The notes beneath the pieces were generated by a model. The model saw only the letters and a program-made list of their open reading frames with translations. It made no database searches and was not told the DNA's origin. Source: Macrostomum lignano (lineage: Eukaryota). From it: a stretch of 64,000 bases of DNA. How positions within the stretch are numbered: position 1 is the stretch's first letter; the number at the start of each line of letters is the position of its first letter. The stretch is taken from positions 62,001 through 126,000 of the forward strand of contig NIVC01000759.1 of NCBI GenBank assembly GCA_002269645.1, in the 5' to 3' direction. The position numbers and the translations under genes were made by a program. Shown piece after piece: positions 8,717 through 63,784 of the stretch.

Positions 8717-8745
8717 TTCCAGCTGCTCCCCATTTATCGAGACTA

Positions 8746-17514: not shown

Positions 17515-17853
17515 CGCCTCGAACCTTTAAAACCATCGCCCGATGTCCACTGGAGAGTCGGTCTCCAAGGGCTCGATTTGACCAGCCGTCGTCGCCAGTG
17601 TTAAGTTTTGGCCGAAGAATGATAACAAATTCAAAGACAACTTTTATGAGCAGCCCTTGGCTTGCTACTTTCTATAACGTTCGCTCGCTCTATAAGCGAG
17701 GTGTTTTGGAACCTTTTATTTTATACCGCTTACGAGCATAGCTTATGCTTCTCGATGTCGTGGTCTGTATCAAACGGAACGAGTTTGTAACCATAGGCAT
17801 ACAGCCACAAAGTAAATTCAGTTATAGCTAAGAGCTCGATAGCTCACACAAAG

Positions 17854-25996: not shown

Positions 25997-28900
25997 ATGC
26001 AGAAGCCGCAGCAGTACAGCTGGAAGGACACCAATTTGGCCCTGTTCGGCTCCGATGAAGAGCGAAAGGTCAAGAGTAAGTAGGAAGCTGAGGAAAATTG
26101 TGTTAAATGAATCTTGTCCCAAAATAAAAGTTTTCCAGGTAAAATTTCTTGGGACACTCTTGGGTAAGAGTGTCCCAAGGTAATAGTGTTTCAAGGTAAA
26201 TGTTTCGCAGGTAAAAGTGTTCCAGGTAAAAGTGTTTCAGGTAAAAGTGTTCCGGGTAAAATTGTTCCAGGTAAAAATGTTCCAGGTAAAAATGTTCCAG
26301 GTAAAAATGTTCCAGGTAAAAGTGTCCCAGGTAAAGGTATCCCAGGTAAAAGTGTCCCAGATAAAAGTGTCCCAGATAAAAGTGTTCCAGGTAAAAGTGT
26401 TCCAGGTAAAAGTGTCCCAGGTAAAGGTATCCCAGGTAAAAGTGTCCCAGGTAAAAGTGTCCCAGGTAAAAGTGTTTCAGGTAAAAGTGTTCCAGGTAAA
26501 AGTGTCCCAGGTAAAGGTATCCCAGGTAAAAGTGTCCCAGGTAAAAGTGTTCCAGGTAAAGGTATCCCAGGTAAAAGTGTCCCAGGTAAAGGTATCCCAG
26601 GTAAAAGTGTCCCAGATAAAAGTGTCCCAGATAAAAGTGTCCCAGGTAAAAGTGTCCCAGGTAAAAGTTTTCCAGGTAAAAGTGTCCTAGCAGGTAAAAT
26701 TTCTCCAGTAAAATTCCCATCGCCTTTGAATCTCCTGCAGAGGAGGCCGCCGAGCTGGAACCGGCCTGGGCGGAGGTGCTGGAGTGCTCGGAGCCAAAGC
26801 TGTTCGTGTGGCGAATTGAGGCAAGTATCGATGATTGGCAGCTCTGTTGAGTAGCGTTCGATCCGCCATTGTCACCTGCGCCTACTCACTCTCCAGCAAT
26901 TCAAGGTGGCCAAGTGGGAAAGCGACCTCTACGGCAAGTTCTTCGATGGCGACTCCTACATCGTTCTGAACGTGTACCAGGAGGAGGACGAGGACAAGCT
27001 GTGCTACGACATTCACTTCTGGATTGGCGTGCACAGCACCGCCGACGAGTACGGTACGGCGGCCTACAAGACTGTGGAGCTGGACACCCTGCTGGACGAC
27101 CGGCCAGTCCAGCACCGGGAGGTGCAGGGCCACGAGAGCGACCTGTTCAAGAGCTACTTCCCGGAGATCACCTACATGTCTGGCGGATGCCCCAGCGGCT
27201 TCAACAAAGTGCACACGAGGGAGTACACGCCGCGGCTGTTCCACTTTAAAGGCGAGCGGCGTAACATCATCGTCAAGGAGGTGAGTTCTCTGAGGCCAGC
27301 CTTCGATTCTTGTCATTTTCTTGTCAGCCTCGGCTCTCGGCATTCTCTTCTCAATCTCTTAACAGCCTCAATCTTTTTTCTTTCTCAGTTCTTTTGCTCC
27401 GCCTTCTGTCCGCCCCGCCCCCTCTTACCCATCCCTTGTTCCCCATATCCTTTTCTTTCCATACCCTATTCCCCATTCCTTCTTCCCGTCTTTCAGTCCC
27501 ATCAGTCTGTGCCTCCTGCACCCCAATCAATGCAACCAATTTTATTCCTTCCTACGGAAAGATTAATCCGTCACTTTGCTGTGTATTCACCTGTTCACAG
27601 GTGCACCGTCACCTACTCGTGTATTCACCTGTTCACAGGTGCACCGTCACCTACTCGTGCATTCACCTGTTCACAGGTGCACCGTCACCTACTCGTGCAT
27701 TCCCTTGTTCACAGGTGCATCTTCAATTTGTAATTATTTCTATCTTAAACATTACATCTTAAACTGTTCTAAAACATCCACACCCTCTCATAGGTCACAA
27801 TGTCCCGCAAAGCCCTTGACGAGACCGACGTGTACATCTTGGATCTCGGAGACCGCGCCTACCAATGGAACAGCCGCGGCTGCAACAAGGACGAGCGATT
27901 CAAAGCCGCCCAGTACCTGCGCAAGCTCTGCGAGGAGAGGAACGGTCGACTGGACACCGAGGTGCTGGACCAGGACGACGCTGAAGAGGAGGTCGGTGGC
28001 TGAATCTGCTGCTAATCCTGCGCCTCTGATTCCTGCTGCACTGCCAATGCGTTTAGTTTGAACCTCTTTGACCCATCCCTTCACCCCATCCCTTAAACCC
28101 ACCCTTCAACCCCATCCCTTCAACCTAACCCTTCAACCCCACCCATTCAACCCCACCCATTCAACCCCACCCCTTCAACCCCACCCATTCAACCCCACCC
28201 CTTCAACCTCACCCCTTCAACCCCACCCCTTCAACCTCACCCCTTCAACCCCAGCCTTGCAACCCCATCCCTTCAATCCCACCCCTTCAACCCCATCCCT
28301 TCAACCCTATCCCTTCAACCCTATCCCTTCAATCCCACCCCTTCAACCCCACCCCTTCAACCCCACCCCTTCAACCCCATCCCTTAAACCCACCCTTCAA
28401 CCCCATCCCTTCAACCTCACCCCTTCAACCCCACCCCTTCAACCTCACCCCTTCAACCCCAGCCTTGCAACCCCATCCCTTCAATCCCACCCCTTCAACC
28501 CCACCCCTTCAACCCCACCCCTTCAACCCTATCCCTTCAACCTCACCCCTTCAACCCCACCCCTTCAACCCCACCCTTCAACCCCACCCCTTCAACCCCA
28601 CCCCTTCAACCCCACCCCTTCAACCCCACCCCTTCAACCCCATCCCTTCAACCCCATCCATTCAATCCCACCTCTTCAACCCCACCTCTTCAACCCCATC
28701 CCTTCAACCCGAAGTCGACCTGAATTCTAAAAATATTAAACGCATGCATGCATACATGTACGTGAAGACCCCAGACTGAGCTCACAGCAGACATCCCCAT
28801 AAAAACTGCAGCACGAGTTCTACAACAGCCTGACGGACGAAGAGCTGGAGCCGATCAGCGACCTCGAGCAGGCCTCCTTCTCCATGGCCTTCTCCCAGCC

Positions 28901-30840: not shown

Positions 30841-31329
30841 AGTGGACTTTTAACCTTCTCGCGTGATCCGTCTTCCACTGCACCGAGTATTCCGGGTAGG
30901 CACATCGCGCTCCCCCCCGTGAGGGAGCCAAGTTCTCAAGTTATCAGAGCGGATGCTGAGTAGGAGAGCTCTGGCGAATAATTTATGAGATCGGGTATTT
31001 GCGCCGCCAGGTGAGGCTGAGATATACAGGCTCATCGGTAATGTTTGCTCAAGCAAAACCACTTTAGCAGCGAGCTGCCCCATCGTAAAAAATGAGTTCA
31101 GACGCTACATTCGAACTCAAGCAGCCCTCGATGGGGCGCCTCAGCTGCCGTCCCAGATGCGCATCCGAGTCTAAATTTGTGTTCAGTTGATTTACGACTA
31201 ACATCCTTGAGGCTGATCGCTTTTGAGTGAATTCATCCTGGATCTGAGCGAGAGATGGCCTGATCGCACAAACTCGCCTTGTTTGATGCACCTGGGATGC
31301 TTTGTTGATATTCGCACAGTGATCAGTGA

Positions 31330-32454: not shown

Positions 32455-35400
32455 ATGCTCAATGGCCACTCTTCCAGACAGCCGGGCGACGATTATTTTC
32501 ACGGCGACTCGGCCGTCAGCGAGTTCTCGCTGCACTTGGACTCAACTGAGCCGGCAGCCGCTGCCGCAGCTGTACTCGTCTTCCGGCCCGGCCAGCAGCT
32601 CACCGGCCGAGTCCTCCTGCGGCTGCTGCGTCCGCTGAAGGTGCGCAATCTCGACCTGCTGGTGCGCGGCTGCGGCCATGTCGGCTGGGGCCTCGGCGGC
32701 GGCCATTTCGTTCAAGACGACGAGGTGTACATCAACGACATAGCCGAGCTGGTGGCCACGGGGCCTGGCGAGGTCGCGACGCTGCAGGCCGGAGAGCACG
32801 AGTTCCCCTTCTCCAGCCGCCTGCCGCACCACCTGCCATCGACTTTCACCGGCAGCTGCGGCAGCGTGGCCTACTCAGCCAAGGCCGTCATGCAGGCCGA
32901 TGGCGACGCAGACGGTCCTTGGAGCGCCGTTGAGGCGTTCAGCGTCGAGAGCCTTCTTGAGCTAGAAGATCACTCCGAGTTGATGCAGCCCTGCATTGTT
33001 GACGCCCGAATGGCGGTTGGTGGCAGCAGGTGCGTGAAGGCCTCCCTGTCGCTGCCGCGGCGGGTGTACGCTCCAAGCGAGTACATCAAGATTGACGCCA
33101 CCGTGAACAACCGGTCGCGGAAGGCCATCAGCCGGCTGTGCGTCGGGCTGATGATGGAGTGTCTGTACCAAGCTGGGGGGCAGCAGCAGCACCGGGAGAC
33201 CCTGCTGGTCACCGACAGGACCGACGAATACCGCATCGGCCACTTGGAGGGTAATCGAGTGACTGGCTGAGCTGGTAGGGGAGTGACTGGCTGAGCTGGT
33301 AGGGGAGTGACTGGCTGAGCTGGTAGGGGAGTGACTGGCTGAGCTGGTAGGGGAGTGACTGGCAGAGCTAGTTTGGGATCGGACGAGTCTGTTTGATTCT
33401 ATCAAAAATTCTGTAACTACTTTACAATCAACCGCCAGAGATCTGGTAGCCTGTCAGAGAGTGATTGGTTCAGAAGCTGGCAGCTGAGGGAAAAAGTCAC
33501 GTTAGGAGGTTAGTGATTTGCATGCCGATTCAGCGCAGCTTTCTTTTTTCGCTCTGATGCCTCAGTTGAGTAATTGCTTGTCGCGTGTATTTGGACCAGC
33601 TAGCAGATCTCGCCCACGTTTTCCACGCAGCAACAAGATGCAGTCGAGCGAGTCAGCCTCCCTCATACACTTAATAAGCATCGCCAGTAATTGTTATCCC
33701 GCTTAGTCTGGCGATGAGGCTGTTGGCGCTGTGAAGCTGCCCCCCCCCCTGTGATGTTTGGGCGCCGCCCCCCGCTGTGAAAAGCCCGAATTCTGCTGGC
33801 TGCTGTTCGGTTTTCCCGCTTTCTGGGGACTTCGCCAGCACCGTGAGCTGCTGCTGCTTGCTAATTGCAGCGCGCCTCTTCCCAGAGGTGACGACTTTTC
33901 GTCCCTAAGCGCACACAGGGAGTCCAGGGAAAGCGGCTCCCCTCCCTTCCTGTAGCGAAAGCAGCAGCAGCTGGGATCCTGGCTTAGGCCTGAGCGCGGT
34001 GTTGCCAGGGCCTGCTAAAAATTGTCAGCGCTTGTGTCGAGGCAGAAATTCTCCCCACCCCCCTTTTAGTCCAGGAAAGATGTTTGCTTCCGTCGGACAT
34101 GATGGGAATTGTCAGTCTATGCATCCCGGCAGGCCTTGTCTCATCGAGAGCCACTCATGGAGCAGAAGTTCTCGAGAGATTGGCAGGGAATGAATGAATC
34201 GATATGAATGGAGACTCCCGTCCCGGATGAGATTCGGGTAGCTAAATCTGAGACTTAATCGCGCGTTCTCTCAAGTGAAAAGCAGCCCGAGTTTCTTGGA
34301 GTCAGTTCTCAGGCAGCAAGGCCTCCACCTGAACTTTGTGGGAGTGCAGGCGACTCGCGATCCCTTGAAAACAGACTCCTTCATCATATAGCAACAGCTG
34401 TAGGAACTGCTCCAAGAGAAGACTTCAAGTCAGGGGTCGGCAAACTGCGGCCCGCGAAGCCTCTCTATCCGGCCCTCGGGTCCTTTGAGACTTTAAAATA
34501 GCAATCCGGCCCTCGGGTCCTTTGAGACGTTAAAATGGCAATCCGGCCCTCGGGTCCTTTGAGACGTTAAAATGGCAATCCGGCCCTCGGGTCCTTTGAG
34601 ACTTTAAAATGGCAATCCGGCCCTCGGGTCCTTTGAGACGTTAAAATGACAATCCGGCCCTCGGGTCCTTTGAGACGTTAAAATGGCAATCCGGCCCTCG
34701 GGTCCTTTGAGACGTTAAAATGGCAATCCGGCCCTCGGGTCCTTTGAGACTTTAAAATGGCAATCCGGCCCGCTCAAGGTTCATGTCTCTTCTCTCCTCT
34801 CTCTTCTTTTCCCTCTCCTCTTTTCTCTCCCCTCTCTTCTCTCCTCTATTCTCTCCCCTCTCTCTTCTATCTTCTCTCTCTTCTCCCCTCTCTCCTCTCC
34901 TCTCTTGCTCTCTCTCCTCTTTTCTCTCTCTTCTCTCCCCTCTCCTCTACTCGTATCTGCTGCATTTTCTCTCATCCCATCTCTCTTCTCTCCTCTCTCA
35001 TTTTCTACGAGCTCGCATTCCCTCTTCTTTCTGCTCTCATCTGGCCCGCTGCCATGAGCTGGTTTCTTTATCTGGCCTTGAGGTAAATAAGTTTGCCGAG
35101 CCCTGCTCTAAGCCCATTTTCGACCGCATTTTTGAGATTCAAAGCACCTCCCGGACACTAATTAGTGACCTTGGGACTTCTGGCCTGTAGGAGGACGGAA
35201 CCATATGGTTGCCCGCACACTCTTGGCCTGTAATCCAGTCCGCCTGCCTCTCTCCAGTGTTCTTCATCCAGTGCGAGGTCTTAACCTCTATCCCTCTCTG
35301 CTACCCCACTGCTAACTCTGCCCGTCACGTACTTTAAGCAGTATTGAGGCCGTAGACTTGCATGTCCGTAGGGCTGGAAAATGTTCGTTTCTTAGAAAAT

Positions 35401-38323: not shown

Positions 38324-39328
38324 AACAGACAGCTCCGGTCTCAGACAGCTCCGGTCACAGACAGCTCCGGTCTCAGACAGCTCCGGTCTCAGACAGCTCC
38401 GGTCTCAGACAGCTCCGGTCACAGACAGCTCCGGTCACAGACAGCTCCGGTCACAGACAGCTCCGGTCTCAGACAGCTCCGGTCTCAGACAGCTCCGGTC
38501 ACAGACAGCTCCGGTCACAGACAGCTCTGGTCACAGACAGCTCCGGTCACAGACAGCTCCGGTCACAGACAGCTCCGGTCTCAGACAGCTCCGGTCTCAG
38601 ACAGCTCCGGTCTCAGACAGTTCCGGTCTCAGACAGCTCTGGTCACAGACAGCTCCGGTCACAGACAGCTCCGGTCTCAGACAGCTCCGGTCACAGACAG
38701 CTCCGGTCTCAGACAGCTCCGGTCTCAGACAGCTCCGGTCACAGACAGCTCCGGTCTCAGACAGCTCCGGTCACAGACAGCTCCGGTCACAGACAGCTCC
38801 GGTCACAGACAGCTCCGGTCTCAGACAGCTCCGGTCACAGACAGCTCCGGTCACAGACAGCTTTGGTCACAGACAGCTCCGGTCTCAGACAGCTCCGGTC
38901 ACAGACAGCTCCGGTCTCAGACAGCTCCGGTCACAGACAGCTCCGGTCACAGACAGCTCCGGTCTCAGACAGCTCCGGTCACAGACAGCTCCGGTCACAG
39001 ACAGCTCCGATCACAGACAGCTCCGGTCTCAGACAGCTCCGGTCACAGACAGCTCCGGTCACAGACAGCTCCGGTCACAGACAGCTCCGGTCACAGACAG
39101 CTCCGGTCTCAGACAGCTCCGGTCACAGACAGCTCCGGTCTCAGACAGCTCCGGTCTCAGACAGCTCCGGTCACAGACAGCTCCGGTCTCAGACAGCTCC
39201 GATCACAGACAGCTCCGATCACAGACAGCTCCGGTCACAGACAGCTCCGGTCACAGACAGCTCCGGTCACAGACAGCTCCGGTCACAGACAGCTCCGGTC
39301 ACAGACAGCTCCGGTCACAGACAGCTCC
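38324..39328. repeat. 16-bp minisatellite CAGACAGCTCCGGTC(A/T)
   Basis: About 62 copies. Confidence 0.97.
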
Positions 39329-40037: not shown

Positions 40038-43000
40038 TCAGTTCTCCAGAAAGCCGGCCTCCATCTCTCCCAGGATGTAATGGATGGTCTTGGCGTAGAT
40101 CTCGGCGATGCTGTCGTTGTACCGGTCCTCCAGGGTCAGCTTCACGGCCTCCAGGAACGGCTGCTCCATCGCCTGCGGTTGGAAAGGAGCGTGGGGGAGT
40201 GACTGGCTGAGCTGGTAGGGGAGTGACTGGCTGAGCTGGTAGGGGAGTGACTGGCTGAGCTGGTAGGGGAGTGACTGGCTGAGCTGGTAGGGGAGTGACT
40301 GGCTGAGCTGGTAGGGGAGTGACTGGCTGAGCTGGTAGGGGAGTGACTGGCTGAGCTGGTAGGGGAGTGACTGGCTGAGCTGGTAGGGGATTTACTGGCT
40401 GAGCTGGTATGGGAGTGACTGGCTGAGCTGGTAGGGGAGTGACTGGCTGAGCTGGTAGGGGATTTACTGGCTGAGCTGGTAGAGGAGTGACTGGCTGAGC
40501 TGGTAGGGGATTTACTGGCTGAGCTGGTAGGGGAGTGACTGGCTGAGCTGGTATGGGAGTGACTGGCTGAGCTGGTAGGGGAGTGACTGGCTGAGCTGGT
40601 AGGGGAGTGACTGGCTGAGCTGGTAGAGGAGTGACTGGCTGAGCTGGTAGGGGAGTGACTGGCTGAGCTGGTAGGGGAGTGACTGGCTGAGCTGGTAGAG
40701 GAGTGACTGGCTGAGCTGGTAGGGGAGTGACTGGCTGAGCTGGTAGGGGAGTGACTGGCTGAGCTGGTAGGGGAATGACTGGCTGAGCTGGTAGGGGAGT
40801 GACTGGCTGAGCTGGTATGGGAGTGACTGGCTGAGCTGGTAGGGGAGTGACTGGCTGAGCTGGTAGGGGAGTGACTGGCTGAGCTGGTAGGGGAGTGACT
40901 GGCTGAGCTGGTAGGGGAGTGACTGGCTGAGCTGGTATGGGAGTGACTGGCTGAGCTGGTAGGTGAGTGACTGGCTGACTGAGGATCCGAGCTTCTCCGT
41001 GCTTGCCCAAACCGCTCGCTCTCCTCATCCCAGAATCCCAGCCGCCACATCGGGAAATTCTCAGGGAATCAGCTGCGGTTTTCAGCGGTGCATTAAGTGG
41101 TCTCCCGGCCGCCATCGACCCAAGCCAGCCTGTCCACTGGCAGTTGCAGTCCCCAGACAGACAGGCATATTTTCCGCTCGAGTGGCAGCGCAGACCAAGA
41201 GGAAACGGACGGGCCGGGCGGCACACGAGAGAGTGACCGCCTGAGGGCACTCGGTGCTCAACAGAGAAACCGGACACGCGATAGCGGCTGGCCTTTCCTG
41301 CCTGACAATTTCTTTCTCATTTTCTGTCTCTCTGCCCTGCCTCCCGGGAGTCTGCTGGGTTGAGCAGATCGGGCGAACCTTCCAATCCCTTGGTTTGGGG
41401 AGGGGGAAATTTTTGTTTGATGAGGCCGCGACAGGAGGCTGGCCAATCAGGGTGCCAACATGACAGGAAGGCAGGAAGAAGCTTGACTGCTGCGATTCCG
41501 CATCGTGTGGGTGGATACCGCTGGTCTGTCTAGGAATTGGGAGTCGGAATTCGTTGTACATGCATGAGTTGCTTCTGCACTTTTACTCACTGACTGTATC
41601 AGGATTTCTCTTAGTCTAAGTGGATTAATCACGGTCTTAATAGGTTGCTCATACACGATAGGGTTGCTCATACACTAGCTAGATTGGTCATGCACTAGCT
41701 AGATTGGTCATACACTAGCTAGATTGGTCATACACTAGCTAGATTGGTCATACACTAACTATACGTAGATTGGTCATACACTAGCTAGATTGGTCATACA
41801 CTAGCTAGATTGGTCATACACTAGCTAGATTTCTCATACACTAGCTAGATTGGTCATACATTAGCTAGATTGGTCATACACTAGCTAGATTGGTCATACA
41901 CTAGCTAGATTGGTCATACACTAACTACATGTAGATTGGTCATACACTAGCTAGATTGGTCATACACTAGCTAGATTGGTCATACACTAGCTAGATTGGT
42001 CATACACTAGCTAGATTTCTCATACACTAGCTAGATTGGTCATACATTAGCTAGATTGGTCATACACTAGCTAGATTGGTCATACACTAGCTAGTTAGGT
42101 CATACACTAGCTAGGTTGGACATACACTAGCTTTGATCAAATGTAGCAGCTATGAGTGTGAGCTGTTCACAAGCAGGCTCAGAGTGCAGTTTACTATTTC
42201 TACATCTACATCGCTCAGAATCTTGAATTAGGTCAAGTTGCGCTCACACTGGCCAAATAGCTTGCCTACTGTAAGCCCCAGGAGTTTTGCAACTTCAGTC
42301 CGCATCCTCCCAAAGCGCTATAAAAGTACATTTCAGGTTGAGAGAGCAGATTTCGCAAGCAGCCGCGCGGCGATGTCGGAGCCAGGATCAGCCGCGGCCA
42401 GCAGCCGTCAGTCAGCTGCAGCGTTTCCCACTCGCCCAGCCTCCTCCGGCGGGAACAGCGCCAGGAATGAGCCGTCTCTGCCCTCCCGCCCTGCTCCCTC
42501 TCCCCACCCCCTGCTTCCCGTCCGCAGCCAGCCGGAACTGCCCTCAGTGGGAATCTGCGGAATTCACCGGCTCCCCGCTGCCGGCGGGACACGCAGAGTG
42601 CTCACCAGCTACGCTCAACAACGGAGTCCTAACGGATTCTGGTTCTGAATCGGGACAATAGCCTCTTCATAGCTATTAATATTTTTAGGAAATTTTCTGA
42701 CATTTTCTGTCAAATCGCATGTAAAAGTATAGTGTCATAACTTGTCTAAATACATGAAAATATCACTTCTAAATTTGTCTATGGCCGAATTCCACAGACC
42801 CCCTTTTGAGCCATAGACAATATAACATTAACATCTCCAGGGCAGACAAGCTTTGCACACCGAATCAACGAATGGTCTTTTGGCCATAGACATTCTCAGC
42901 CTCAACACGCCTTCCCATTCACAGAATGCATGAAGCATCTTAAGGTCACTGCTACAGAGTCACGCACTTCTTTTATTCTACTCTACTTTCTCCCTCTCTA

Positions 43001-46000
43001 GGCTGCTACGAGATAGCAACCGGTTGGCCAATATTGACACTAGCGAGGCCGTGTTGCGTATAAAAAATCTAGTGAACTCAGGCACGGCTTTGGGGGGGGG
43101 AGCTGGGGGATGGCAGAGAAAGGATTTTCCAACCGTTATCTTTCGCTTCATCTCCTCGCCCCATCTCCGGGCTGTCGTGTCTATAGAGGCAACTGGGGAT
43201 TATCAAGTCCATCCTTATCAGTTCCCCCTTTCACTTTTATCTCCGGAGCTGCTCCCGCTGCTCGCCCCCCCCCCGAATCCGCTCAAATCATCAGTCCTTT
43301 GATGTTCCATGCAGCCTCCCTTCGGCCTGTCTGCTCTGGTGTTCGAACAGTTTCTTTGTTCGCTTTATCCTGTGTTCACCCCGGTGGCGATAGGGGTTTC
43401 ACGATTTTGTCTTCCTCTTGCAGTCTGCCTTTCCTACAGTTTACCCTAGTCTGCAGTCTGCCTCTGTCTGCATTCTGCCTCTGTCTGCAGTCTGCCTCTG
43501 TCTGCAGTCTGCCTCTGTCTGCAGTCTGCCTCTGTCTGCAATCTGCCTCTGTCTGCAATCTGCCTCTGTCTGCAGTCTGCCTCTGTCTGCAGTCTGCCTC
43601 TGTCTGCAGTCTGCCTCTGTCTGCATTCTGCCTCTGTCTGCAGTCTGCCTCTGTCTGCAGTCTGCCTCTGTCTGCAGTCTGCCTCTGTCTGCAGTCTGCC
43701 TCTGTCTGCAGTCTGCCTCTGTCTGCAGTCTGCCTCTGTCTGCAGTCTGCCTCTGTCTGCAGTCTGCCTCTGTCTGCAGTCTGCCTCTGTCTGCAGTCTG
43801 CCTCTGTCTGCAGTCTGCCTCTGTCTGCAGTCTGCCTCTGTCTGCAGTCTGCCTCTGTCTGCAGTCTGCCTCTGTCTGCAGTCTGCCTCTGTCTGCAGTC
43901 TGCCTCTGTCTGCAGTCTGCCTCTGTCTGCAGTCTGCCTCTGTCTGCAGTCTGCCTCTGTCTGCAGTCTGCCTCTGTCTGCAGTCTGCCTCTGTCTGCAG
44001 TCTGCCCCTTGGCCGCAGTCTGCCCCTTGGCCGCAGTCTGCCCCTTGGCCGCAGTCTGCCCCTTGGCCGCAGTCTGCCCCTTGGCCGCAGTCTGCCCCTT
44101 GGCCGCAGTCTGCCCCTTGGCCGCAGTCTGCCCCTTGGCCGCAGTCTGCCCCTTGGCCGCAGTCTGCCCCTTGGCCGCAGTCTGCCCCTTGGCCGCAGTC
44201 TGCCCCTTGGCCGCAGTCTGCCCCTTGGCCGCAGTCTGCCCCTTGGCCGCAGTCTGGCTGCCCGAACTCACCCAGAACAGCTTGGCGTAAAATCCAGCAA
44301 ATTTCTGATGCGTGGCGGCGGCCCGCCGGACCCGCTGCCGCGTCACCTCCATGTTGTCGATGTTGAGGATGGCCTCGTCCAGGATGCCCATCACCAGCTC
44401 GCCGTGCAGCGCCAGCTCGCCGTTCTCGCGAATATTGTCGCTGAGCTCGAGGTGGCTGAACTTCACAAACATTGCCTGCAGGTCTTTGTTTGTGCGGAAT
44501 AAGCTGAAATCGGGGAGGGTGGGGGTTTCTTAGAAATCTTCGATTGAACAAAGGATTTCGTCTGTCTGACGGACCGCGCATTTCCTCCGCAGTGGGAAAG
44601 TTGCTTGGATGCGACAGGCAGCCCCCTCCCCCCCCCCCAAGAGCCGCAAGTCAGAGTGGCAAAGGAAGTCGAATCCGCCGCCCCCAGAGAAACAGGAATT
44701 CGAAATTCGTACTTTTCCGGTCCATTTCTCCACTTTGGCTGCGCCTCGCACACGGCTGGTGCTGCCGCATACGGGCGGAGGTCATGGGACCCCCTTCCCC
44801 CCGGTGCAGCTGGCATTCAACCTCCCCCCTCCAGTCTCCAGCGCCAGTCCTGCCACACAGCCTGCACCGCAGCTAATTTGCAGGGAATTTCGTCCTTCGC
44901 TGGCGGCTGGAAGGCCGGAGCTGACTGATAAGCGGCTGTCAACGGAATTCCATTAATATTTTACAATTGTTGCCAGCGCGTGAGCAGCATGCAGAGTTCA
45001 CAGGGACAGGTGAAGGCCAAGCATCTTCACCTACGCGACACTGCTGAGAACCTCTCTCTCGCTGAAGTCACAACTTTTTTCTGCAAAACATTTTTTCTGT
45101 TCTGATTACTTCAGAGGCCCAATTACGCGAATTTTATTTGTGCCTTCTGAGCTGCGCCGTCGGTGAGTTGAAATTGCAGAAATGAGGGAAAATCCTGAGC
45201 GAACCCGGCCTGACTCAGGGCAGCTCGACAGGCACTCAGACTCGGGCCCCGCCGAAACTAATGAGTCACGCCTGACCGAGCTGACTGAGCTCCCTCTCTG
45301 ACTGCCGAGACTCCCCTAGGAGATTTTCAGATCCTGCTTGAGAAGTTTTGCTCCATCTGAGTTCGGCAGGCAGGCACCAAGACGGCCAAGAGTGCAGAGC
45401 ATTGCGTCAACTCCTTGCCAGCTCATTAATTATTAATGCGGTACTCAAAGTGATGCTTTTATAATGATGAGGCTACACTATGCAGTAGAACTCTATCATT
45501 GTCGCCAAAAAATTGACGCTGTGTGCACCTGCAAGACATCAGTGGGGTAGCAATTTGGCCTGCAGGCGGGCGGGCGGGCGGGCAGCGAGGGGAAGAGCAG
45601 GGAGCCAGGGAGAAGGAGGCTGCAGTCGCAATGCATGCAGGCCCTCCCGCAACGCGTTTTATTGCACCCTCCAGCTTGCCTGAGCTGCAGCCGCCCTGTG
45701 GGAGCAGCCATCCAGCTTGAGTAGTCAGTAGAGTGGGAAGTTTGCTGTAGAAACAAGCGGCTTGCCTGACTCCCCTAGGAATGCAACTGATATTGACATT
45801 CGGGATGTAGAAAGGGGGGAAAGCTCCCTTGCTTCGCGCAGCAGTCTCTAAGGAGCGGATGCTCTTCACTTCTCTTCTCTATCCGTCGCTTAGCCATTGC
45901 GGCTGCATGGTAATTCCAAAGCTCGGCTATGCTGTGCTCAGCCGCGAGTCAGATCCCAGATGCCTGCTGACACCGGCATAGCCAGACAGGATTTATAATG

Positions 46001-47377
46001 GATTAAAATCTACGAATGGGACTCAAGAGGTGCTTTGCCGTTCTTGTCAGTTGGAGCACATTTTGCTATGACAGGCCAAATGGTTTTTTTGAGGGAGAGG
46101 AGACGCTTATCAATCTGCGACTGGGAAAATCTGCACTTTGGAACTGCAAAATCTGAGACAGGAGCTGTGGGTTCCTGAGAAAACTGGGACGATGAAACTA
46201 TGAGCAAATGAATGAGGCACTGACTGAATGAGGCACTGACTGAATGAGGCTCTGACTGAATGAGGAACTGACTGAATGAGGCTCTGACTGAATGAAGAAC
46301 TGACTGAAAGAGGCACTGACTGAATGAGGCTCTGACTGAATGAGGCACTGACTGAATGAGGCTCTGACTGAATGAGGCTCTGACTTAATGAGGCACTGAC
46401 TGAATGAGACACTGACTGAATGAGGCTCTGACTGAATGAGGCACTGACTGAATGAGGCACTGACTGAATGAGGCACTGACTGAATGAGGCACTGACTGAA
46501 TGAGGCACTGACTGAATGAGGCTCTGACTGAATGAGGAACTGACTGAATGAGGCTCTGACTGAATGAAGAACTGACTGAAAGAGGCACTGACTGAATGAG
46601 GCTCTGACTGAATGAGGCACTGACTGAATGAGGCTCTGACTGAATGAGGCTCTGACTTAATGAGGCACTGACTGAATGAGACACTGACTGAATGAGGCTC
46701 TGACTGAATGAGGCACTGACTGAATGAAGAACTGACTGAATGAGGCACTGACTGAATGGGGCACTGACTGAATGAAGAACTGACTGAATGAGGCACTGAC
46801 TGAATGAGGCTCTGACTGAAAGAGGCACTGACTGAATGAGGCTCTGACTGAAAGAGGCACTGACTGAATGAAGAACTGACTGAATGAGGCACTGACTGAA
46901 TGAGGCTCTGACTGAATGAGGCACTGACTGAATGAAGAACTGACTGAATGAGGCACTGACTGAAAGAGGCACTGACTGAATGAGGCACTGACTGAATGAA
47001 GAACTGACTGAATGAGGCACTGACTGAATGAGGCTCTGACTGAAAGAGGCACTGACTGAATGAGGCTCTGACTGAAAGAGGCACTGACTGAATGAGGCAC
47101 TGACTGACAGAGTACCAACACACCTGATGAACATTTCCACTCCTGTGTCGGACACTTTCCGGTGAACAGCTTTCCAAGAAGTCTTCAGCTTGTAGACCTC
47201 GCGCTCAGTGAGCCCCAGCTTTGGGTCAGCCTCCTTCTTGGCCTCTGCCTGCTGCTGTCCGCTCGCTGAGCCGTCAGCCTCGGCGCCAGCATCGGCAGCG
47301 TAGGGGCACTGCCTCGGCTGGCGCTTGTCGCTGAATCGCACGGAGCCCAGACGGCCCTTGAACTGAGTGCAGCCCAT
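40038..47377 (-). CDS. Globin X-like globin with N-terminal extension starting MGC, 3 exons, 206 aa
   Basis: Exons 47124-47377, 44272-44503, 40038-40172 splice in frame. A12 Trp (KTSWK), B10 Phe, CD1 Phe (AMFVKF), E7 His (LALHG), F8 His (AATHQKF). Introns at B12.2 and G7.0. Confidence 0.92.
40197..40980. repeat. 24-bp minisatellite GAGTGACTGGCTGAGCTGGTAGGG
   Basis: About 33 copies ending ~25 bp from the acceptor of globin exon 3. Confidence 0.97.
41668..42132. repeat. 20-bp minisatellite TACACTAGCTAGATTGGTCA
   Basis: About 23 copies; variant units recur as a duplicated block. Confidence 0.96.
43450..44255. repeat. Compound minisatellite: 17-bp GCAGTCTGCCTCTGTCT then 18-bp GCAGTCTGCCCCTTGGCC
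   Basis: Abrupt unit switch at ~44000; starts ~16 bp from the globin exon 2 donor. Confidence 0.97.
46210..47108. repeat. 16/17-bp minisatellite ACTGACTGAATGAGGC / TCTGACTGAATGAGGC
   Basis: Starts ~15 bp from the globin exon 1 donor. Confidence 0.96.
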
Positions 47378-48367: not shown

Positions 48368-49080
48368 GCGCCAGTTTAGACAAAAAGGCGCCAGTTTAGA
48401 CAAAAAGGCGCCAGTTTAGACAAAAAGGCGCCAGAGTAGACAAAAAGGCGCCAGAGTAGACAAAAAGGCGCCAGAGTAGACAAAAAGGCGCCAGAGTAGA
48501 CAAAAAGGCGCCAGAGTAGACAAAAAGGCGCCAGAGTAGACAAAAAGGCGCCAGAGTAGACAAAAAGGCGCCAGAGTAGACAAAAAGGCGCCAGATTAGA
48601 CAAAAAGGCACCAGAGTAGACAAAAAGGCGCCAGAGTAGACGCAGAGGCGCCAGAGTAGACACAGAGGCGCCAGAGTAGACACAGAGGCGCCAGAGTAGA
48701 CACAGAGGCGCCAGAGTAGACGCAGAGGCGCCAGAGTAGACACAGAGGCGCCAGAGTAGACACAGAGGCGCCAGAGTAGACACAGAGGCGCCAGAGTAGA
48801 CGCAGAGGCGCCAGAGTAGACACAGAGGCGCCAGAGTAGACACAGAGGCGCCAGAGTAGGCAAAGAGGCGCCAGAGTAGGCACAGAGGCGCCAGAGTAGA
48901 CACAGAGGCGCCAGAGTAGACAAAGAGGCGCCAGAGTAGGCACAGAGGCGCCAGAGTAGGCACAGAGGCGCCAGAGTAGACACAGAGGCGCCAGATTAGA
49001 CACAGAGGCGCCAGAGTAGGCACAGAGGCGCCAGAGTAGACACAGAGGCGCCAGAGTAGACACACAGGCACCAGAGTAGC
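48368..49080. repeat. 20-bp minisatellite GCGCCAGAGTAGACA(C/A)A(G/A)AG
   Basis: About 35 copies upstream of the globin gene. Confidence 0.96.
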
Positions 49081-56593: not shown

Positions 56594-57600
56594 CTAAATT
56601 TTGAAGACAACTTCCAAAATCTGCTTTAGCAATCTGTAGGCTGCTCTTTTCTTTTTTTGAAACTTATGTGATTCCTCATTCTCTAATTGCAGATTCTTAA
56701 TTAGTACTAGACTTCCTAATGCAGTATTTTTGGGCTTTTTCTGATTTTCTAAACTTTCTTGTCTATGGCTATGTACCTTCTCATATTTCTCTCTTACAAG
56801 TTTCCTTGCACTCTCCAATTTCTTTGCATGTTTGGCAATATACGTTGGATAATTAGTGCAATTATTTGATTCTAATCTCACTATCTATAGGCAAAACTGC
56901 TTCTCTTCCAAACAATAGAAAATGAGATGAATATCTGGTGGTCTGGTTCACACTAGTGTCTAGTTCTGACTGCTATTAATGCTACTGGGATTAGCAAGTA
57001 TCACCAGTATCAACATTTTACAAATTGCAAAACAAATTAAACTGCTTGCTAGTAAATGCTTTACCATTGTCTATGTGAATCCAATGGCACTGGCCATACT
57101 CACTGAACACTCTCTCTTGTAATAATTCGATGATTGTATCTGCTTTCTGATTACGTATTAGGAAAGCAAATGGGTATTGCGTGTTATTATCCACTATAGT
57201 TAAAATGTACTAGTGCCCTCTTTTGCTTACTTTTGAGATTGGCCCGATCACATCTATATGCAATCAATGAAATGGTTCACTGATTGGAAATGACTGCACT
57301 GGCGCCTGAATCTTATGACCTCTCTTGCTCTCTAGGCATGGAATACACTCCACCACATATTTCTCTACTGTGGTCACTAAGCCTAGCCTCCAAAATCTCT
57401 CTTTGACATGTTGGATTGTCTTGTCCCTGCCTAAGTGTCCAGCTAGTAGGCTATCATGTAGATTGCTAAGAACTAGCTTGTCCAAGGATCTAGGCAAGAC
57501 AACTTTCCATATTTTATCTTCTTCAATAATGAACATAGGTGATTCACCAAAAGTTACTAAACCTTGGCTGGGAACTAGTGTCTCATTTTCCATATTCTCC
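56594..57600 (-). mobile_element. Degraded Gypsy integrase (element probably spans ~53.3-57.7 kb)
   Basis: LHDSLLAGHLGRDKT...CIPC HHCC, DVIGP, IVDN, IHIDNGKAFTS core; many stops. Confidence 0.85.
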
Positions 57601-58612
57601 CCAACCTAATACCTAGCAACTACTATCTATTCTTGTCCTGATTGATGTCTTAACAAGCAAAACTTTTGCTGATGAAGCTCTAGATAACTGACTCAACAAC
57701 TTTTGTCTTGAAACCTTAGAAATTCTGCACTGATGGCATTGTGTCTCTGCCTGAAAAAATGGCAAATGATTGATTTGGATGGCAATTACTTTGTTTCTTT
57801 AAGTCTTTCCGTATTTAAAAAAAACTTGGTTTGGAGGAAGGTTTTAGAAACCACAAGAACATTCTCAACAACTGGATAGTCAAGTACTTTACTTAAGTAG
57901 GTCTAGCCTAAGCCTAGGTCCAGGTCTAAGCCCTTGCAGTGATAATGACAAGTAACTTTGGATAGGTGTTTTTATTTAAAAAAAGGTTTAAAATGTATTC
58001 ATTTTTATACTAAAATTAAAAGTAAACTATAAAATAAAAAGCAATTTAAAGTTTAAAGTTGTCAGGTCATAGCAAGATTTCTAGAATTGATATTTTGTTT
58101 TACTTTTTACAAAGGCTAAATGATTTTGTTGTTCAAACTTTCCATTTTTCTAATACAACATGGTTTTGCCAAAATTCATATAAAATGTTTTTTTGTTCAG
58201 AATTATAGCTATTGTTTTTTCTATAGTTGCTTAAACCTAGATACATATTTTACTTTGATTGCTATACAACCCTATTGAAATACTTTTCAATAGCATGAAT
58301 ATGTATGCTTGTCAGATGCCTATAATTCTAGGTATGCTATACCATATTAATACCATTTTAAGGAGTACTAGACAGAAGACACCAATAACAAGTTTTAGAC
58401 ATGCTAGGCTGCACACTGCACTGTTACCAGATTGTGGCATTCCTATGTTGTGTCGCAACTATCTGTGCTTAAATTCTCTATGCTGCACCGGACAGCATTT
58501 ATAAAAAAGAGCTGGAGGCCATATATTAGAACTTCACTATTGATGGACGTATTTAATGATATTGATATTCATTAATGCTTTTCCTTCATGCTCTACGCCC
58601 TCAGCAGCAGCC

Positions 58613-61600
58613 ATGGGCGACTTGTTCCGCAGCCAGGAGATGACCCTCTGCCAGCTGTTCCTGCAGGCCGAGGCCGCCTTCGCCTGCGTGTCCGAGCTGG
58701 GCGAGCTCGGCCTCGTGCAGTTCCGCGACCTCAAGCCCGACACCAACGCCTTCCAGCGAAAGTTTGTCAACGAAATCCGCCGCTGTGACGAGATGGAGCG
58801 GAAGCTGCGCTACTTGGAGAAGGAGATCAAGAAGGACAGCGTGCCAGTGCTGGACACCGGCGACAATCCCGAAGCTCCGAATCCCCGCGAGATGGTCGAC
58901 CTTGAGGCCAACCTGGAGAAGCTGGAGAACGAGCTGCGCGACGTCAACGCCAACGAGGAGTCGCTGAAGAGGAATTACCTGGAGCTGACCGAGCTCAAGC
59001 ACATCCTGCGCAAGACCCAGACTTTCTTTGAGGAGGTGAGGCGGCTGACTCATTTGGTGACTCATTTGGATGGGGTGACTTATTTGGATGGGGTGACTCA
59101 TTTGGATGGGGTGACTCATTTGGATGGGGTGACTCATTTGGATGGGGGGTGACTCATTTGGATGGGGTGACTCATTTGGATGGGATGACTCATTTAGAGA
59201 GGTTGAATCATTTGGATGGGGGTTGCGGAGCAGCTCGGGCCAGTTGCAGGTCTCTCAGGAGATTCAGGTCTACAATGCCCGAGTGTGCGGCACTGTGCAC
59301 ACGTCCATTTCCCGACATGCAAGGGAAGAGTCACTCGCAGTCTAAGCTGTGCGCAGCCCTCCGATTCAATCAGGGCCGAACCGAACTTGGTTTTGGCCAG
59401 CCAAGGCTGGAGGCCGCAGCGGCCTGTTCGGCTTTCTTATCTTGCCTGCGATATCTTGCGACTGTTTCAGTTTGCCCGCTTTGAATCTGTGACTCTGCTG
59501 CGCACGAAGCTGTTAACAGTTTGGCTGTCAAAGTTGCCATTACAGCAGCAGTATTGAATTTCTAGTTTTAAACTGTGCAGGGTTGCAGTTGCAGTTTAAA
59601 GTGGGCCCAAGTGTGACTAAACCAAGCAAGCGGTGGCAATATTGTGAATCATCGATTTAATTGGGTTAAAAAAAGTTGGCCGACCCCTGATGCAATCCAA
59701 TATGAAGCCTACGACATGAAAAATGCTCTTATTTAAAGATTTATATATTTTCCTATCCATAAAGTGTATATTTTTTAGGCAGTGAAACTCAGATTGTGTT
59801 CAGATGAAACAGGAAATTTCCTCACTCGCTCTTGATATCAGTCGGTATCTTTTACGATAGTATCCGGTATGCAGCCTACTCGTGAGTAGTAATTGTTGCT
59901 CCCTGGCCCATCGCGCCGTGTTGCGCATTTGCCGCCTTAGACAGTCGATCAGCACCGAGGCGGCGCGCTTGGCCGCGCCCTCGGCGCCGGAGGTTCTCAG
60001 CGCCAGCGGCACCAGTCGGACGAGCGGGCCAGCCTGATCGGGGCTGGTGGCAGCGCTGAGGAGGCCTGGCCTCAGGCTGGCGGCCTGCAGCTTCAGTGAG
60101 TAACTCAGTGCGAGCCGTGGCAGGTGAAAGTCTCCGGTCTGCAGGGCACCTGCGTTTTAGTTCGTCCGGCCTTTTCTTATCTGTCGTTTGTTGTCCGTGG
60201 ATAATTCCATTTGAATCCGTATTATGGAAAATTCCATTGAAATGCTACTATGGAAAATTCCATTGCAATGCTACTATGGAAAATTATATTGCAGTGCTAC
60301 TATGGAAAATTCCATTGCAATGCTACTATGGAAAATTCCATTGCAATGCTACTATGGAAAATTCCATTGCAATGCTACTATGGAAAATTCCATTGCAATG
60401 CTACTATGGAAAATTCCATTGCAGTGCTACTATGGAAAATTCCATTGAAATGCTACTATGGAAAATTCCATTGCAGTGCTACTATGGAAAATTCCATTGA
60501 AATGCTACTATGGAAAATTCCATTGCAGTGCTACTATGGAAAATTCCATTGCAGTGCTTCTATGGAAAATTCCATTGCAATGCTACTATGGAAAATTCCA
60601 TTGCAGAGCTACTATGGAAAATTCCATTGCAGTGCTTCTATGGAAAATTCCATTGCAATGCTACTATGGAAAATTCCATTGCAGAGCTACTATGGAAAAT
60701 TCCATTGCAGTGCTACTATGGAAAATTCCATTGCAATGCTACTATGGAAAATTCCATTGCAGTGCTACTATGGAAAATTCCATTGCAGTGCTACTATGGA
60801 AAATTCCATTGCAATGCTACTATGGAAAATTCCATTGCAGTGCTACTATGGAAAATTCCATTGCAGAGCTACTATGGAAAATTCCATTGCAGTGCTACTA
60901 TGGAAAATTCCATTGCAATGCTACTATGGAAAATTCCATTGCAGTGCTACTATGGAAAATTCCATTGCAGTGCTTCTATGGAAAATTCCATTGCAATGCT
61001 ACTATGGAAAATTCCATTGCAGAGCTACTATGGAAAATTCCATTGCAGTGCTACTATGGAAAATTCCATTGCAATGCTACTATGGAAAATTCCATTGCAA
61101 TGCTACTATGGAAAATTGAGTTGAACTTTTACTATAGTAAAAAATTCTGTATTAATTTTTCGACGACTTTTGAACATTATTCGTAATTATCTGTATGGGA
61201 AATTTTTAACTTGCGTCCTGTTTGTTTGGTAAGTCTTTTCTGGTTCCGATATAGTTACTGTTGTGTTGCTGTGCAGTGTCTACCCGTTATAAAAAGCTTT
61301 AATAAGCAAGTCTCAAGCTGATCTCGAGCTGCCTGTGCACCCTTATTGATCTGACCGCCATCGATCAAAACCCGCCAAAGGCGCAGGGCCGTGTCACCGA
61401 CGAGGAGTCCTGGAGCAACGCGCTCTACCGGGCCGACGTCGCCCTCACCGCCAGCGGCGGCGGCGTCGGCGGTGGCGACTCCGCAGCGGCGGAGGAGGCC
61501 GCGTCAGGAGGGGGTCGGGGCTTCCGGTTTGAGTGAGTCCTGAGGGTCAGGTGGACAGGTGCGCTGTTGACCATCCAGTGCTGTCTAGTAGATTTTTTAG

Positions 61601-63784
61601 ATAATATAAGATTTTTATCACCAATATTCGATTGCAGTACAATCATTTTCTCTGAGATTTTCACTGGGAATTCGGATTGATTCAGTGCTTTTTCGATTAT
61701 TTATTCATTTCCCAGAACATTTTCTATGACACCTCATGGTATCAGATTTTATCTACTCTCTGCTTGCTGCGTCCCAAATGTATAGAATGACACTGCTGGT
61801 CCACCCCAGGTCTCTGTTGACCCATTATTGACCTCTCTGCTGAATCACCCCAGACATCTGTTGACCCATTATTCACCTCTCTGCTGAATCACCCCAGACC
61901 TCCCTGCTGACCCACCCCAGACCTCTGTTGACCCATTATTGACCTCTCTGCTGAATCACCCCAGACCTCTGTTGACCCATTATTCACCTCCCTGATGACC
62001 CACCCAGACCTCTGTTGACCCATTATTGACCTCCCTGATGACCCACCAAGATCTCTGTTGACCCATTATTGACCTCCCTGATAACCCACCGAAGACCTCT
62101 GTTGATTCATTATTGACCTCCCTGATGACCCACCCAGATCTCTGTTGACCCATTATTGACCTCCCTGATGATCCACCCAAGACCTCTGTTGACCCATTAT
62201 TCATCTCCCTGATAACCCACCCAAGATCTCTGTTGATTCATTATTGACCTCCCTGGTGACCCACCCAAGACCTCTGTTGATTCATTATTGACCTCCCTGA
62301 TGACCCACCCAGATCTCTGTTGACCCATTATTGACCTCCCTGATGACCCACCCAGATCTCTGTTGATTCATTATTGACCTCCCTGATGATCCACCCAGAT
62401 CTCTGTTGATTCATTATTGACCTCCCTGATAACCCACCGAAGACCTCTGTTGATTCATTATTGACCTCCCTGATGACCCACCCAGATCTCTGTTGACCCA
62501 TTATTGACCTCCCTGATGATCCACCCAAGACCTCTGTTGATTCATTATTGACCTCCCTGATGATCCACCCAGATCTCTGTTGATTCATTATTGACCTCCC
62601 TGATGACCCACCCAGATCTCTGTTGATTCATTATTGACCTCCCTGATGATCCACCAAGATCTCTGTTGACCCATTATTGACCTCCCTGATGATCCACCCA
62701 AGACCTCTGTTGACCCATTATTCATCTCCCTGATAACCCACCCAAGACCTCTGTTGATTCATTATTGACCTCCCTGATGACCCACCCAGATTTCTGTTGA
62801 CCCATTTTTGACCTCTCTGATGACTCACCCAGACTTCTGTTGACCCATTTTTGACCTCTGTTGACCCATTTTTGACCTCTGATGACCGACCCAGACCTCT
62901 GTTGACCCATTTTTGACCTCTGCTGACCCACCCCAGACCTCCATGCTGACTCACCCCTGACCTCCCTTCTGACCCACCCCTGACCTCTCTGCTTTCAGTA
63001 ATTAATAAGTCATATCGCAGCTATGTAAATTGCATTTATCAGTGATTTTTTGACAGTTTGATCTGACAAACCGTGAATTCGCATCCTATGTTGACTATGA
63101 TTATAAGCCCACCATTGCTTTATATCGAAGCCGCGTTTTAATGCTATTTAATGCCCTGTGCAGACCGGAGACTTTTCAACCTGTGATTTTCCTGTTACAC
63201 TGAATAAGAAAAGCTGGGGTTTCCGGCGCACCGGAAGTTAACTGGAAGCTGCGGCCTCGCCGGTGATCCCGCAGATTCTTGGCCGGAGTGCTGCTTCGGG
63301 AGCGCCTGCCGGCCTTCGAGCGGATGCTCTGGCGCGTCTGCAGGGGCAACGTCTTCCTCAAGCAGGCCGACATTGACGTGCCGCTGGAGGACCCGGCCTC
63401 CGGTGACGAGGTGCTCAAGGCCGTTTTCATCGTGTTCTTCCAAGGCGACCAGCTCAAGAGCCGCGTGAAGAAGATCTGCGAGGGCTTCAGGGCCAGCCTG
63501 TACCCCTGCCCAGACAGCCAGGCTGAGCGCAGGGAGATGGCCATCTCCGTGATGACCCGCATCGAGGACCTCAACACCGTGCTCAACACCACCGTTGACC
63601 ACCGTCGCCGGCTGCTCATGTCGGCCGCCAAGAACCTGCGGCTCTGGTTCATCAAGGTCGGCAAGATCAAGGCCATCTACCACACGCTAAACATGTTCAA
63701 CGTTGAGGCCACCAGCAAGTGCCTCATTGGCGAGGCCTGGTGCGCGGTTGACGATCTGGACAAAATTCACCTGGCTCTGCGCAG
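58613..63784 (+). CDS. ATP6V0A: V-type H+-ATPase V0 subunit a, 5' part (gene continues beyond window)
   Basis: MGDLFRSQEMTLCQLFLQ..AF.CVSELGELG.VQFRDL..FQRKFVNEIRRCDEMERKLRY (58613-59035). FLAGVL.RER..AFERMLWR.CRGNVF..WFIKV.KIKAIYHTLN.FN (63275-63784). An acceptor just upstream of the ATG implies a 5' UTR intron. Confidence 0.96.
59046..59222. repeat. 18-bp minisatellite GACTCATTTGGATGGGGT
   Basis: About 9 copies starting ~10 bp after the donor. Confidence 0.93.
59941..60095 (+). CDS. ATP6V0A: V-ATPase a alternative exon A (phase 0 to 2)
   Basis: ccgccttag|ACA...CTT CA|gtgagt; open frame TVDQHRGG...WPQAGGLQL(Q). An in-frame alternative acceptor lies at 59953. Confidence 0.72.
60220..61117. 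repeat. 26-bp minisatellite CTACTATGGAAAATTCCATTGCA(A/G)TG
   Basis: About 34 copies between alternative exons A and B; each unit holds the hairpin ATGGAA-AA-TTCCAT. Confidence 0.97.
61381..61532 (+). CDS. ATP6V0A: V-ATPase a alternative exon B (phase 0 to 2)
   Basis: ccgccaaag|GCG...TTT GA|gtgagt; open frame AQGRVTDEESWSNALY...GGGRGFRF(E). Confidence 0.72.
61808..62990. repeat. ~43-bp two-module minisatellite (GACCCATTATTGACCTCCCTGAT / GACCCACCCAGATCTCTGTT)
   Basis: Degenerate array with variant ends. Confidence 0.93.

Follow-up and report, generated by a model that had tools for sequence, protein, structure and literature searches.

We use sequence analysis and comparison with other animals to study a stretch of 64,000 nucleotides from Macrostomum lignano (contig NIVC01000759.1; the whole stretch is called the window below) which, judging by its sequence, holds the 5' part of a gene for V-ATPase subunit a. 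The first two constitutive coding exons of this gene are separated by two short exons, A and B, whose lengths are such that the reading frame is kept only when exactly one of them is included. We propose that either exon can supply the linker between the two constitutive parts of the protein, and that an RNA bridge, formed by a 29-bp pairing of intronic segments on the two sides of exon B, favors the use of exon A. The parts of this proposal carry different weight: it is quite probable that A and B form a genuine pair of mutually exclusive exons, the explanation as a whole (frame-locked alternative linker exons with the bridge favoring A) is one we hold with moderate confidence, and we lean slightly toward an influence of the 29-bp pairing on exon choice. 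The four exons concerned are:

58613-59035, forward strand: coding exon 1 of V-ATPase subunit a, translation MGDLFRSQEM...KTQTFFEE
59941-60095, forward strand: alternative linker exon A, 155 nt (3n+2), TVDQHRGG...AGGLQL(Q)
61381-61532, forward strand: alternative linker exon B, 152 nt (3n+2), AQGRVTDEESWSNALYRAD...GRGFRF(E)
63275-63784, forward strand: constitutive downstream exon, a split-codon base followed by FLAGVLLRERLPAFERMLW, donor GTGAGA

The assignment of the gene comes from its constitutive exons. Exon 1 starts with the ATG at 58613, which is the start of the gene, and ends in phase 0 with TTC TTT GAG GAG/GTGAGG at 59035 (a slash marks an exon boundary); it matches positions 1-117 of the Pfam profile PF01496 (V_ATPase_I) with an E value of 5.6e-35. 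The downstream exon begins after the acceptor at 63275 (cgcAG/A TTC TTG GCC), where its first base completes a split codon, and matches positions 160-328 of the same profile (E 7.3e-59). A significant V_ATPase_I match thus stands on either side of the variable region, and this places the gene in the family; the roughly 42 profile positions in between (118-159), which correspond to the linker, are absent between the two constitutive exons. We find 399 homologues of V-ATPase subunit a at E ≤ 1e-30, and those closest to the spliced N-terminus, from termite, beetle, ostracod, sea slug and mayfly, reach no more than 69% identity. The gene extends past the end of the window. Its start codon stands in a strong context (GCCGCCATGG), and a pyrimidine tract with a CAG acceptor lies about 20 nt upstream (58590-58615); this acceptor signal implies that an intron interrupts the 5' untranslated region and that the first exon, farther upstream, is untranslated. 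Throughout the window exons are GC-rich, with a GC content at third codon positions (GC3) of about 0.9, and introns are AT-richer and hold many minisatellites and retroelement remains.

Both alternative exons carry what a spliced exon needs. Exon A is preceded by the acceptor ccttAG/ and followed by the donor /GTGAGT, and frame 0 is its sole open frame; exon B has the acceptor caaAG/, the same donor, and an open frame 0, with frame 1 open as well. They stand out as GC islands with sharp boundaries (0.74 for A and 0.76 for B, against 0.38-0.48 in the introns), their CpG levels resemble those of real exons, and their GC3 in frame 0 is 0.75 for A and 0.86 for B, against 0.9 in the flanking exons. 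Each is single-copy within the window. Each also has a second in-frame acceptor a short way downstream, at 59953 for exon A (12 nt, which would drop TVDQ) and at 61387 for exon B (6 nt, a CAG whose use would drop AQ); these could give small extra isoform variants, and the downstream CAG of exon B looks stronger than the AAG upstream of it.

The frame rule follows from the lengths. Since both exons are 3n+2 nt long, with a phase-0 donor before them and, after them, an acceptor whose exon contributes the one missing base, only messages with a single linker exon stay in frame. When neither exon is included, translation meets a stop after 33 codons; when both are included, the frame is shifted and the first stop is met about 190 nt inside the downstream exon. 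The alternative acceptors that we find are all offset by multiples of 3 nt, which leaves A plus B at 3n+1, and so no combination of them rescues double inclusion. To see how singular the two exons are, we listed every AG...GT stretch of 40-300 nt in the 4.2-kb interval between the constitutive exons that is 3n+2 nt long and open in frame. Strong donors close a GC-rich open stretch of this kind at two places, 60095 and 61532; the remaining candidates with strong donors are AT-rich pieces of a 26-bp minisatellite array and one 83-nt stretch at 59406-59488, and no third exon or frame-correcting variant is present among the 3n+2 candidates of the interval. A preliminary description of the window had proposed the constitutive boundaries at 59035 and 63275, two GC-rich exons of 155 and 152 nt with gtgagt donors and stop-free frames, and a frame shift on inclusion of both or neither. 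The sequence agrees on all of these, and the stops computed for each product bear out the last.

Adjacent exons with usable splice sites and a shared length class that is not a multiple of three are features of mutually exclusive clusters. What A and B lack is the recognizable mutual similarity of homologous, tandem-duplicated exons: their local alignment scores 27, under the mean of shuffled sequences (z -0.6), and only their lengths are alike, in line with the preliminary description of the two linkers as unrelated. Two simple ways of enforcing exclusion, incompatible U12-type splice sites and steric hindrance, are ruled out, for the donors are all of the GTGAG type and 1285 nt of intron separate A from B. 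UGCAUG sites (RBFOX) do not occur on the forward strand between 59036 and 63274, nor do they in the unc-32 exon 4 cluster of the worm.

Now we consider the same region of the gene in other animals. Two serial linker exons are present in each of seven further loci; those of the four metagenomic contigs were recovered when all 3n+2 candidates in seven loci were scored with profiles of the two linker types described below:

Termite Coptotermes (L001): type 1 at 14416-14501, 86 nt; type 2 at 25060-25157, 98 nt
Tick Rhipicephalus (L007): type 1 at 27046-27132, 87 nt (86 expected); type 2 at 31239-31300, 62 nt
Nematode Aphelenchoides (L005): type 1 at 2065-2189, 125 nt; type 2 at 2316-2437, 122 nt
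Metagenomic animal contig L067: type 1 at 3257-3342; type 2 at 4462-4553
Metagenomic animal contig L068: type 1 at 1522-1607; type 2 at 2749-2840
Metagenomic animal contig L083: type 1 at 1419-1504; type 2 at 1671-1759
Metagenomic animal contig L084: type 1 at 1720-1820; type 2 at 1946-2031

In all seven, FF[DE]E/ closes the upstream exon in phase 0; the downstream exon supplies one base and continues with F[VL]AGV, as in the window. Because these animals share the positions and phases of the introns as well as a series of two 3n+2 linker exons, we favor an ancient over a convergent origin of the two-exon layout, which would then go back at least to the common ancestor of nematodes and arthropods; the preliminary description had left the choice between the two origins open. 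The comparison also reveals errors in gene models, in which the exon types are fused or intron sequence is read in. The moth (Operophtera) model P0022 has both linker types in series with the intron between them translated, and in the termite (Coptotermes) model P0001 the choice of an acceptor farther upstream brings in 15 odd residues. In the tick (Rhipicephalus appendiculatus) an extra G in CTTGGGAGACG breaks the frame of the type-1 exon; it is probably an assembly error, and the gene model P0028 sidesteps it by an odd splice.

The linkers of the homologues fall into two recurring types. Type 1 follows the pattern [MH]xDP..EE...LLGEEGLRAGGQAL[KR]LG and includes the vertebrate linker MADPDLLEESSSLLEP..GRGAPLRLG. 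Type 2 follows [QH]EGG..TESMTRALIxDD....VQLG, with a copepod-like form QDQMD..GQHQQLIQDE..GGLQLG. Against the type-1 profile, only 41 of 2000 shuffles match or beat exon A (128 of 2000 for exon B), and against the non-copepod type-2 profile 9 of 2000 shuffles are as good as exon B, with exon A at chance. With a hidden Markov model (HMM) of all type-2 linkers exon B is not significant, and its signal comes from the subset HMM and from anchored tests only. The first 19 residues of exon B align without gaps with the start of the termite type-2 exon (AQGRVTDEESWSNALYRAD against HEGGLNATESMTRALISDD; score 21, p about 0.0005, with offset 0 the best of all offsets), in a start-anchored test that was chosen after the motif had been seen. 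End-anchored global alignments of A and B with both families beat shuffles at p values from <0.0025 to 0.035. For exon A, the tests taken together give p values of 0.02-0.035 for type 1 and <0.0025 for G-rich type 2. Among the 123 candidate exons of the interval, the type-1 profile finds its best match in the 3' part of A and the non-copepod type-2 profile in B, and this order, type-1-like first and type-2-like second, is that of every other locus scored. Taken together, a weak but consistent signal in the sequences (p about 0.0005-0.03) points to A and B as members of the linker family that have diverged and grown longer by Gly/Ala-rich insertions, A probably being of type 1 and B of type 2.

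How, then, might one exon be chosen over the other? A search for inverted repeats finds that AAAGTCTCCGGTCTGCA at 60127-60143 is the perfect reverse complement of 63159-63175 (17 nt), and these are the cores of two longer complementary arms, here named by analogy with docking-selector systems:

60120-60148, forward strand: selector-like arm, GCAGGTGAAAGTCTCCGGTCTGCAGGGCA, 25-53 nt 3' of the exon A donor
63152-63184, forward strand: docking-like arm, 91-123 nt 5' of the constitutive acceptor, pairs with 60120-60148

The duplex has 29 bp, two of them G-U, its 3' arm carries two 2-nt bulges, and its energy is about -51 kcal/mol; exon B lies in the loop between the arms. Perfect inverted repeats of at least 17 nt spaced within 4.3 kb are expected about 0.016 times in 64 kb, and two are observed. 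The complement score of the 29-bp pairing is 54, against 29.4 +/- 3.4 and a maximum of 40 in 200 shuffles; none of 813 GC-matched natural segment pairs of the window pairs as well, and the joined arms fold with a z score of -6.45. Beyond a core of about 30 nt the regions around the two arms are unrelated, and the middle is best conserved; these non-homologous flanks exclude a transposon end or a long duplication as the origin of the repeat. Complementary elements beyond chance in the position called stem II (a selector past the first variable exon, a docking site before the constitutive exon) are one mark of a docking-selector system, and both are found here. The pairing was absent from the preliminary description.

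The other 17-nt perfect inverted repeat of the window (51901-51917/52215-52231) lies in an AT-rich region upstream of the gene and has a 16-nt relative at 51925-51940/52219-52234. In addition to the selector-like arm we note a direct degenerate copy of its core AAAGTCTCCGGTCTGCA at 59857-59873 (14 of 17 positions), 68 nt 5' of exon A; such 14/17 matches are expected 0.24 times in the whole window, and the duplex of this copy with the docking-like arm is no better than shuffles. Two further pairings were set aside, one of 59400-59437 with 63232-63265, which 2.3% of GC-matched controls equal, and one of 59895-59913 with 61401-61419, which is 74% complementary and taken as chance. RNAduplex on 250-nt segments is uninformative here, since giant interior loops inflate every energy, and a search of Rfam gives nothing above threshold.

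Conserved pairings are seen in other loci:

L083 1530-1540/1865-1875 and L084 1870-1880/2455-2465: inverted repeat with core ACTGACAAC
L067 2607-2617/3984-3994 and L068 868-878/2294-2304: inverted repeat with core AAAGTCAAGCT

In L083 and L084, which are the nearest genomic relatives compared and yet distant, the geometry is like that of the window: the first arm follows the type-1 donor at a distance of 26 or 50 nt, and the second is placed past the type-2 exon and before the constitutive one. The sequence differs from that of the window pairing. The four arms have an identical 9-nt core, ACTGACAAC, between diverged flanks, and folding of the joined arms gives -47.7 kcal/mol (z -4.5) for L083 and -44.8 kcal/mol (z -8.8) for L084. 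The conserved repeat of L067 and L068 (15 bp, one G-U) is unrelated to this one; its arms lie on the two sides of the type-1 exon, as those of stem I do. The window itself has a weak candidate for a pairing of this second kind:

59571-59638, forward strand: stem-I-like docking candidate (weak), imperfect pairing with 61214-61278, would bracket exon A
61214-61278, forward strand: stem-I-like partner, 103-167 nt 5' of exon B

Its duplex reaches -53.9 kcal/mol, as low as none of 681 GC-matched natural pairs, and its arms have the right interleaved order; it was picked post hoc from several hundred comparisons.

Drawing these observations together, we envisage the following mechanism. A disordered linker between FFEE and FLAGVL would be supplied by one exon at a time, the type-1-like A or the type-2-like B. 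Messages with both exons or with neither would meet premature stops and, on the precedent of the worm, be cleared by nonsense-mediated decay; with such products cleared, the layout would be that of an old frame-locked mutually exclusive pair, as in unc-32 exon 4. When the duplex 60120-60148/63152-63184 forms, it would loop out B and bring the donor of A within about 120 nt of the constitutive acceptor, and through this proximity the A isoform would be favored. When the duplex is absent, the proximal exon B would be used, and the balance between the two states may be set by cell-type factors (CELF-like in the worm precedent) or by RNA helicases. More tentatively, and with the odds somewhat against so broad a statement, the two linker exon types may be very old (nematodes and arthropods, possibly older) and held exclusive by their 3n+2 lengths and not by similarity of sequence, with lineage-specific RNA bridges making the choice in several lineages, around the second exon here and in L083/L084 and around the first in L067/L068.

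A number of results weigh against this proposal. On the side of the exons, the similarity of A and B to the linker family is weak, and some of the tests for it were picked after viewing the data: Smith-Waterman alignment of A and B with 50 linkers is not significant, nor is BLASTP against the exons of the relatives, HMM scores are 3-5 bits, and the end-anchored global alignments do not separate the two types for A or for B. The GC3 of exon A lies below that of the flanking exons, and the acceptor of exon B is weak (AAG, 50% pyrimidines). Among 5.8 billion sequences there is no near-identical protein to either spliced isoform or to either exon with short flanks. A scan of metagenome and metatranscriptome contigs yields no A- or B-like peptide; the relatives that it finds are 78-83% identical in the conserved exon, and no same-species pair among the contigs compared differs solely in the linker. 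On the side of the RNA, no comparable pairing lies within 400 nt of the termite or tick exons, and the partner pairing that would favor exon B is only suggestive.

The result for the termite and the tick would be as expected if the exon pair is real and the 29-bp repeat is a neutral accident, for example a small inverted duplication, the choice being made by protein factors and nonsense-mediated decay. Such is the case reported for unc-32 exon 4, which is under UNC-75 with no RNA structure reported, and the second 17-nt inverted repeat, at 51901/52215, demonstrates that the window can hold a repeat of this length elsewhere. We nevertheless judge an accident unlikely, while giving it real weight. 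The arms start 25 nt past a variable donor and end 91 nt before the constitutive acceptor, a placement that, with about one other such repeat per 64 kb, is very unlikely by chance, the flanks of the arms are unrelated, and conserved pairings occur with like geometry in L083/L084 and around the type-1 exon in L067/L068.

A second way to read the same interval is that one exon is functional and the other a decaying or never-used pseudo-exon, so that no isoform switch takes place. The protein searches, which give no transcript support for A or B, would fit this, as would the poor acceptor of B and the GC3 of A, and tblastn detects a single linker exon in the Elysia, Pinctada and ostracod loci. 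Set against it are the open frames, GTGAGT donors, sharp GC islands and exon-like CpG of both exons, the order-dependent similarity of both to the linker family, and the retention of two exons in the same order in seven other loci; furthermore, a strong pairing around B is sensible only if B competes with A. We therefore regard a pseudo-exon as improbable.

The preliminary description had pointed to another element as a possible influence on the choice, the array of 26-bp units between the two exons:

60223-61117, no strand assigned: 26-bp minisatellite, 34.4 copies, 95% matches, in the intron between A and B

The array exists and its unit is partly palindromic, as described: five units fold with z -4.2, and the array against itself has a complement score of z 9.9, so that a self-folding array lying between A and B could in principle govern which is used. 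A special role is very improbable given its surroundings. It is one of 22 minisatellite arrays in the window, whose periods range over 14-43 bp and which cover about 11 kb (17% of bases), and each intron of the V-ATPase subunit a gene in the window holds one. Better folding is seen in the 18-bp array of the first intron (z -6.8) and, some 10 kb off, in the 20-bp array at 48.4 kb (z -8.2); no Rfam family matches, and relatives that have the same exon pair lack such an array. The 26-bp array is thus probably a neutral bystander, and the 29-bp pairing is the better candidate for influencing the choice. Examples of the other arrays are at 26163-26687, 38325-39328, 40194-40978, 43419-44256, 46209-47107, 48368-49079 and 61802-62987; in several arrays the units are palindromic, and their folds far surpass those of shuffled sequence. 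Finally, that A and B are included together, with the frame restored by an unnoticed micro-exon or alternative splice site, is hardly credible, for although frame 1 of B is open and A plus B meets no stop before the downstream exon, the alternative acceptors keep A plus B at 3n+1, and among the homologues linkers of about 100 residues occur solely in gene models that read through an intron.

Elsewhere in the window, a gelsolin-repeat exon lies at 26906-27250 (forward strand) with a 15-nt inverted repeat (27229/27866) adjoining, and an arrestin N/C-domain exon at 32455-33270 (forward strand). An open reading frame at 47150-47377 (reverse strand) starts MGCTQFKG... and has no Pfam match; as a guess only, it might be a globin with an N-terminal acylation site. 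Retroelement remains (integrase H2C2, rve and reverse transcriptase) are found at 1971-11513, 12067-13335, 14137-18787 and 57264-57593, and one integrase fragment precedes the V-ATPase start codon by about 1 kb; the 422-residue open reading frame at 12067-13335 has no Pfam match.

Subunit a targets V-ATPase to different membranes, and worms need the neuronal linker exon in order to move normally (unc-32 e189). Mutually exclusive linker exons of this gene are already known in C. elegans; what we add is a further animal with a probable pair of this kind, the age and the frame lock that emerge from comparison, and a candidate RNA bridge that recurs in geometry and not in sequence. If one of two linkers is chosen here too, tissue-specific tuning of the proton pump through a disordered linker would be an old animal feature and no nematode oddity, and docking-selector control would extend beyond arrays of homologous duplicated exons to the dissimilar exons of a core proton-pump gene. 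The bridge, with two arms that can each be mutated and restored, would then show how dissimilar exons stay mutually exclusive, and it suggests that RNA looping in such clusters reaches past the classic insect examples.

It is instructive to set the window beside the systems that it most resembles. The Vha100-like genes of arthropods (termite and tick) have the same intron positions and phases as the window and serial 3n+2 exons, the type-1-like one first. The type-1 exons share with A an acidic stretch and L[LI]G ... AGG ... L[QKR]L, and the type-2 exons share with B the motif ES..xAL[IY]..D and an RG-containing end. The window exons are about 60-70 nt longer, by Gly/Ala-rich insertions, and the sequence similarity is marginal. 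In the literature searched we find no paper that describes the insect type-1/type-2 pair as mutually exclusive exons.

The closest parallel within the gene family is the one that the preliminary description had drawn, exon 4 of C. elegans unc-32, and the published data support it. Exons 4a, 4b and 4c are 155, 107 and 122 nt long, all 3n+2 (PMC4165533, PMC3585155), and are used in the intestine (4a), in neurons (4b, UNC-75-dependent) and in the pharynx (4c) (PMC3585155). The inclusion of one variant is enforced by the frame and depends in part on nonsense-mediated decay (PMC4165533, PMC3585155). As in the window, the variants are without detectable mutual similarity; the worm has three of them, whereas the window has two. 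The comparison of intron positions that had been called for is supplied by Aphelenchoides (125 and 122 nt), C. elegans itself being compared by exon sizes only. The systems differ in what appears to make the choice: in the unc-32 cluster the regulator is UNC-75 and an RNA structure has not been reported, while in the window a long-range duplex is the leading candidate. In vertebrates the same linker varies in ATP6V0A1, whose canonical form is type-1-like and can have a short insert directly in front of it; from the two forms among our hits, this looks like a short optional insert and not a mutually exclusive pair, and no type-2 linker is present among the vertebrate hits.

For the RNA bridge, the nearest likeness is exon 4.1/4.2 of Drosophila srp, where a selector past the first variable exon pairs with a docking site before the constitutive exon, so that the second variable exon is looped out and the splice sites come together (PMC4691838). 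Mutations that disrupt this stem II abolish the inclusion of exon 4.1, and compensatory ones restore it (PMC4691838). Both srp and the window are two-exon clusters, alike in the position of stem II and the order of the elements, possibly with a weaker, interleaved stem I. They differ in that the srp exons are homologous duplicates, whereas those of the window have no detectable similarity and their pairing is known from sequence alone. Besides srp, the docking-selector systems to which we liken the window are those of 14-3-3xi and of Dscam exons 4 and 9.

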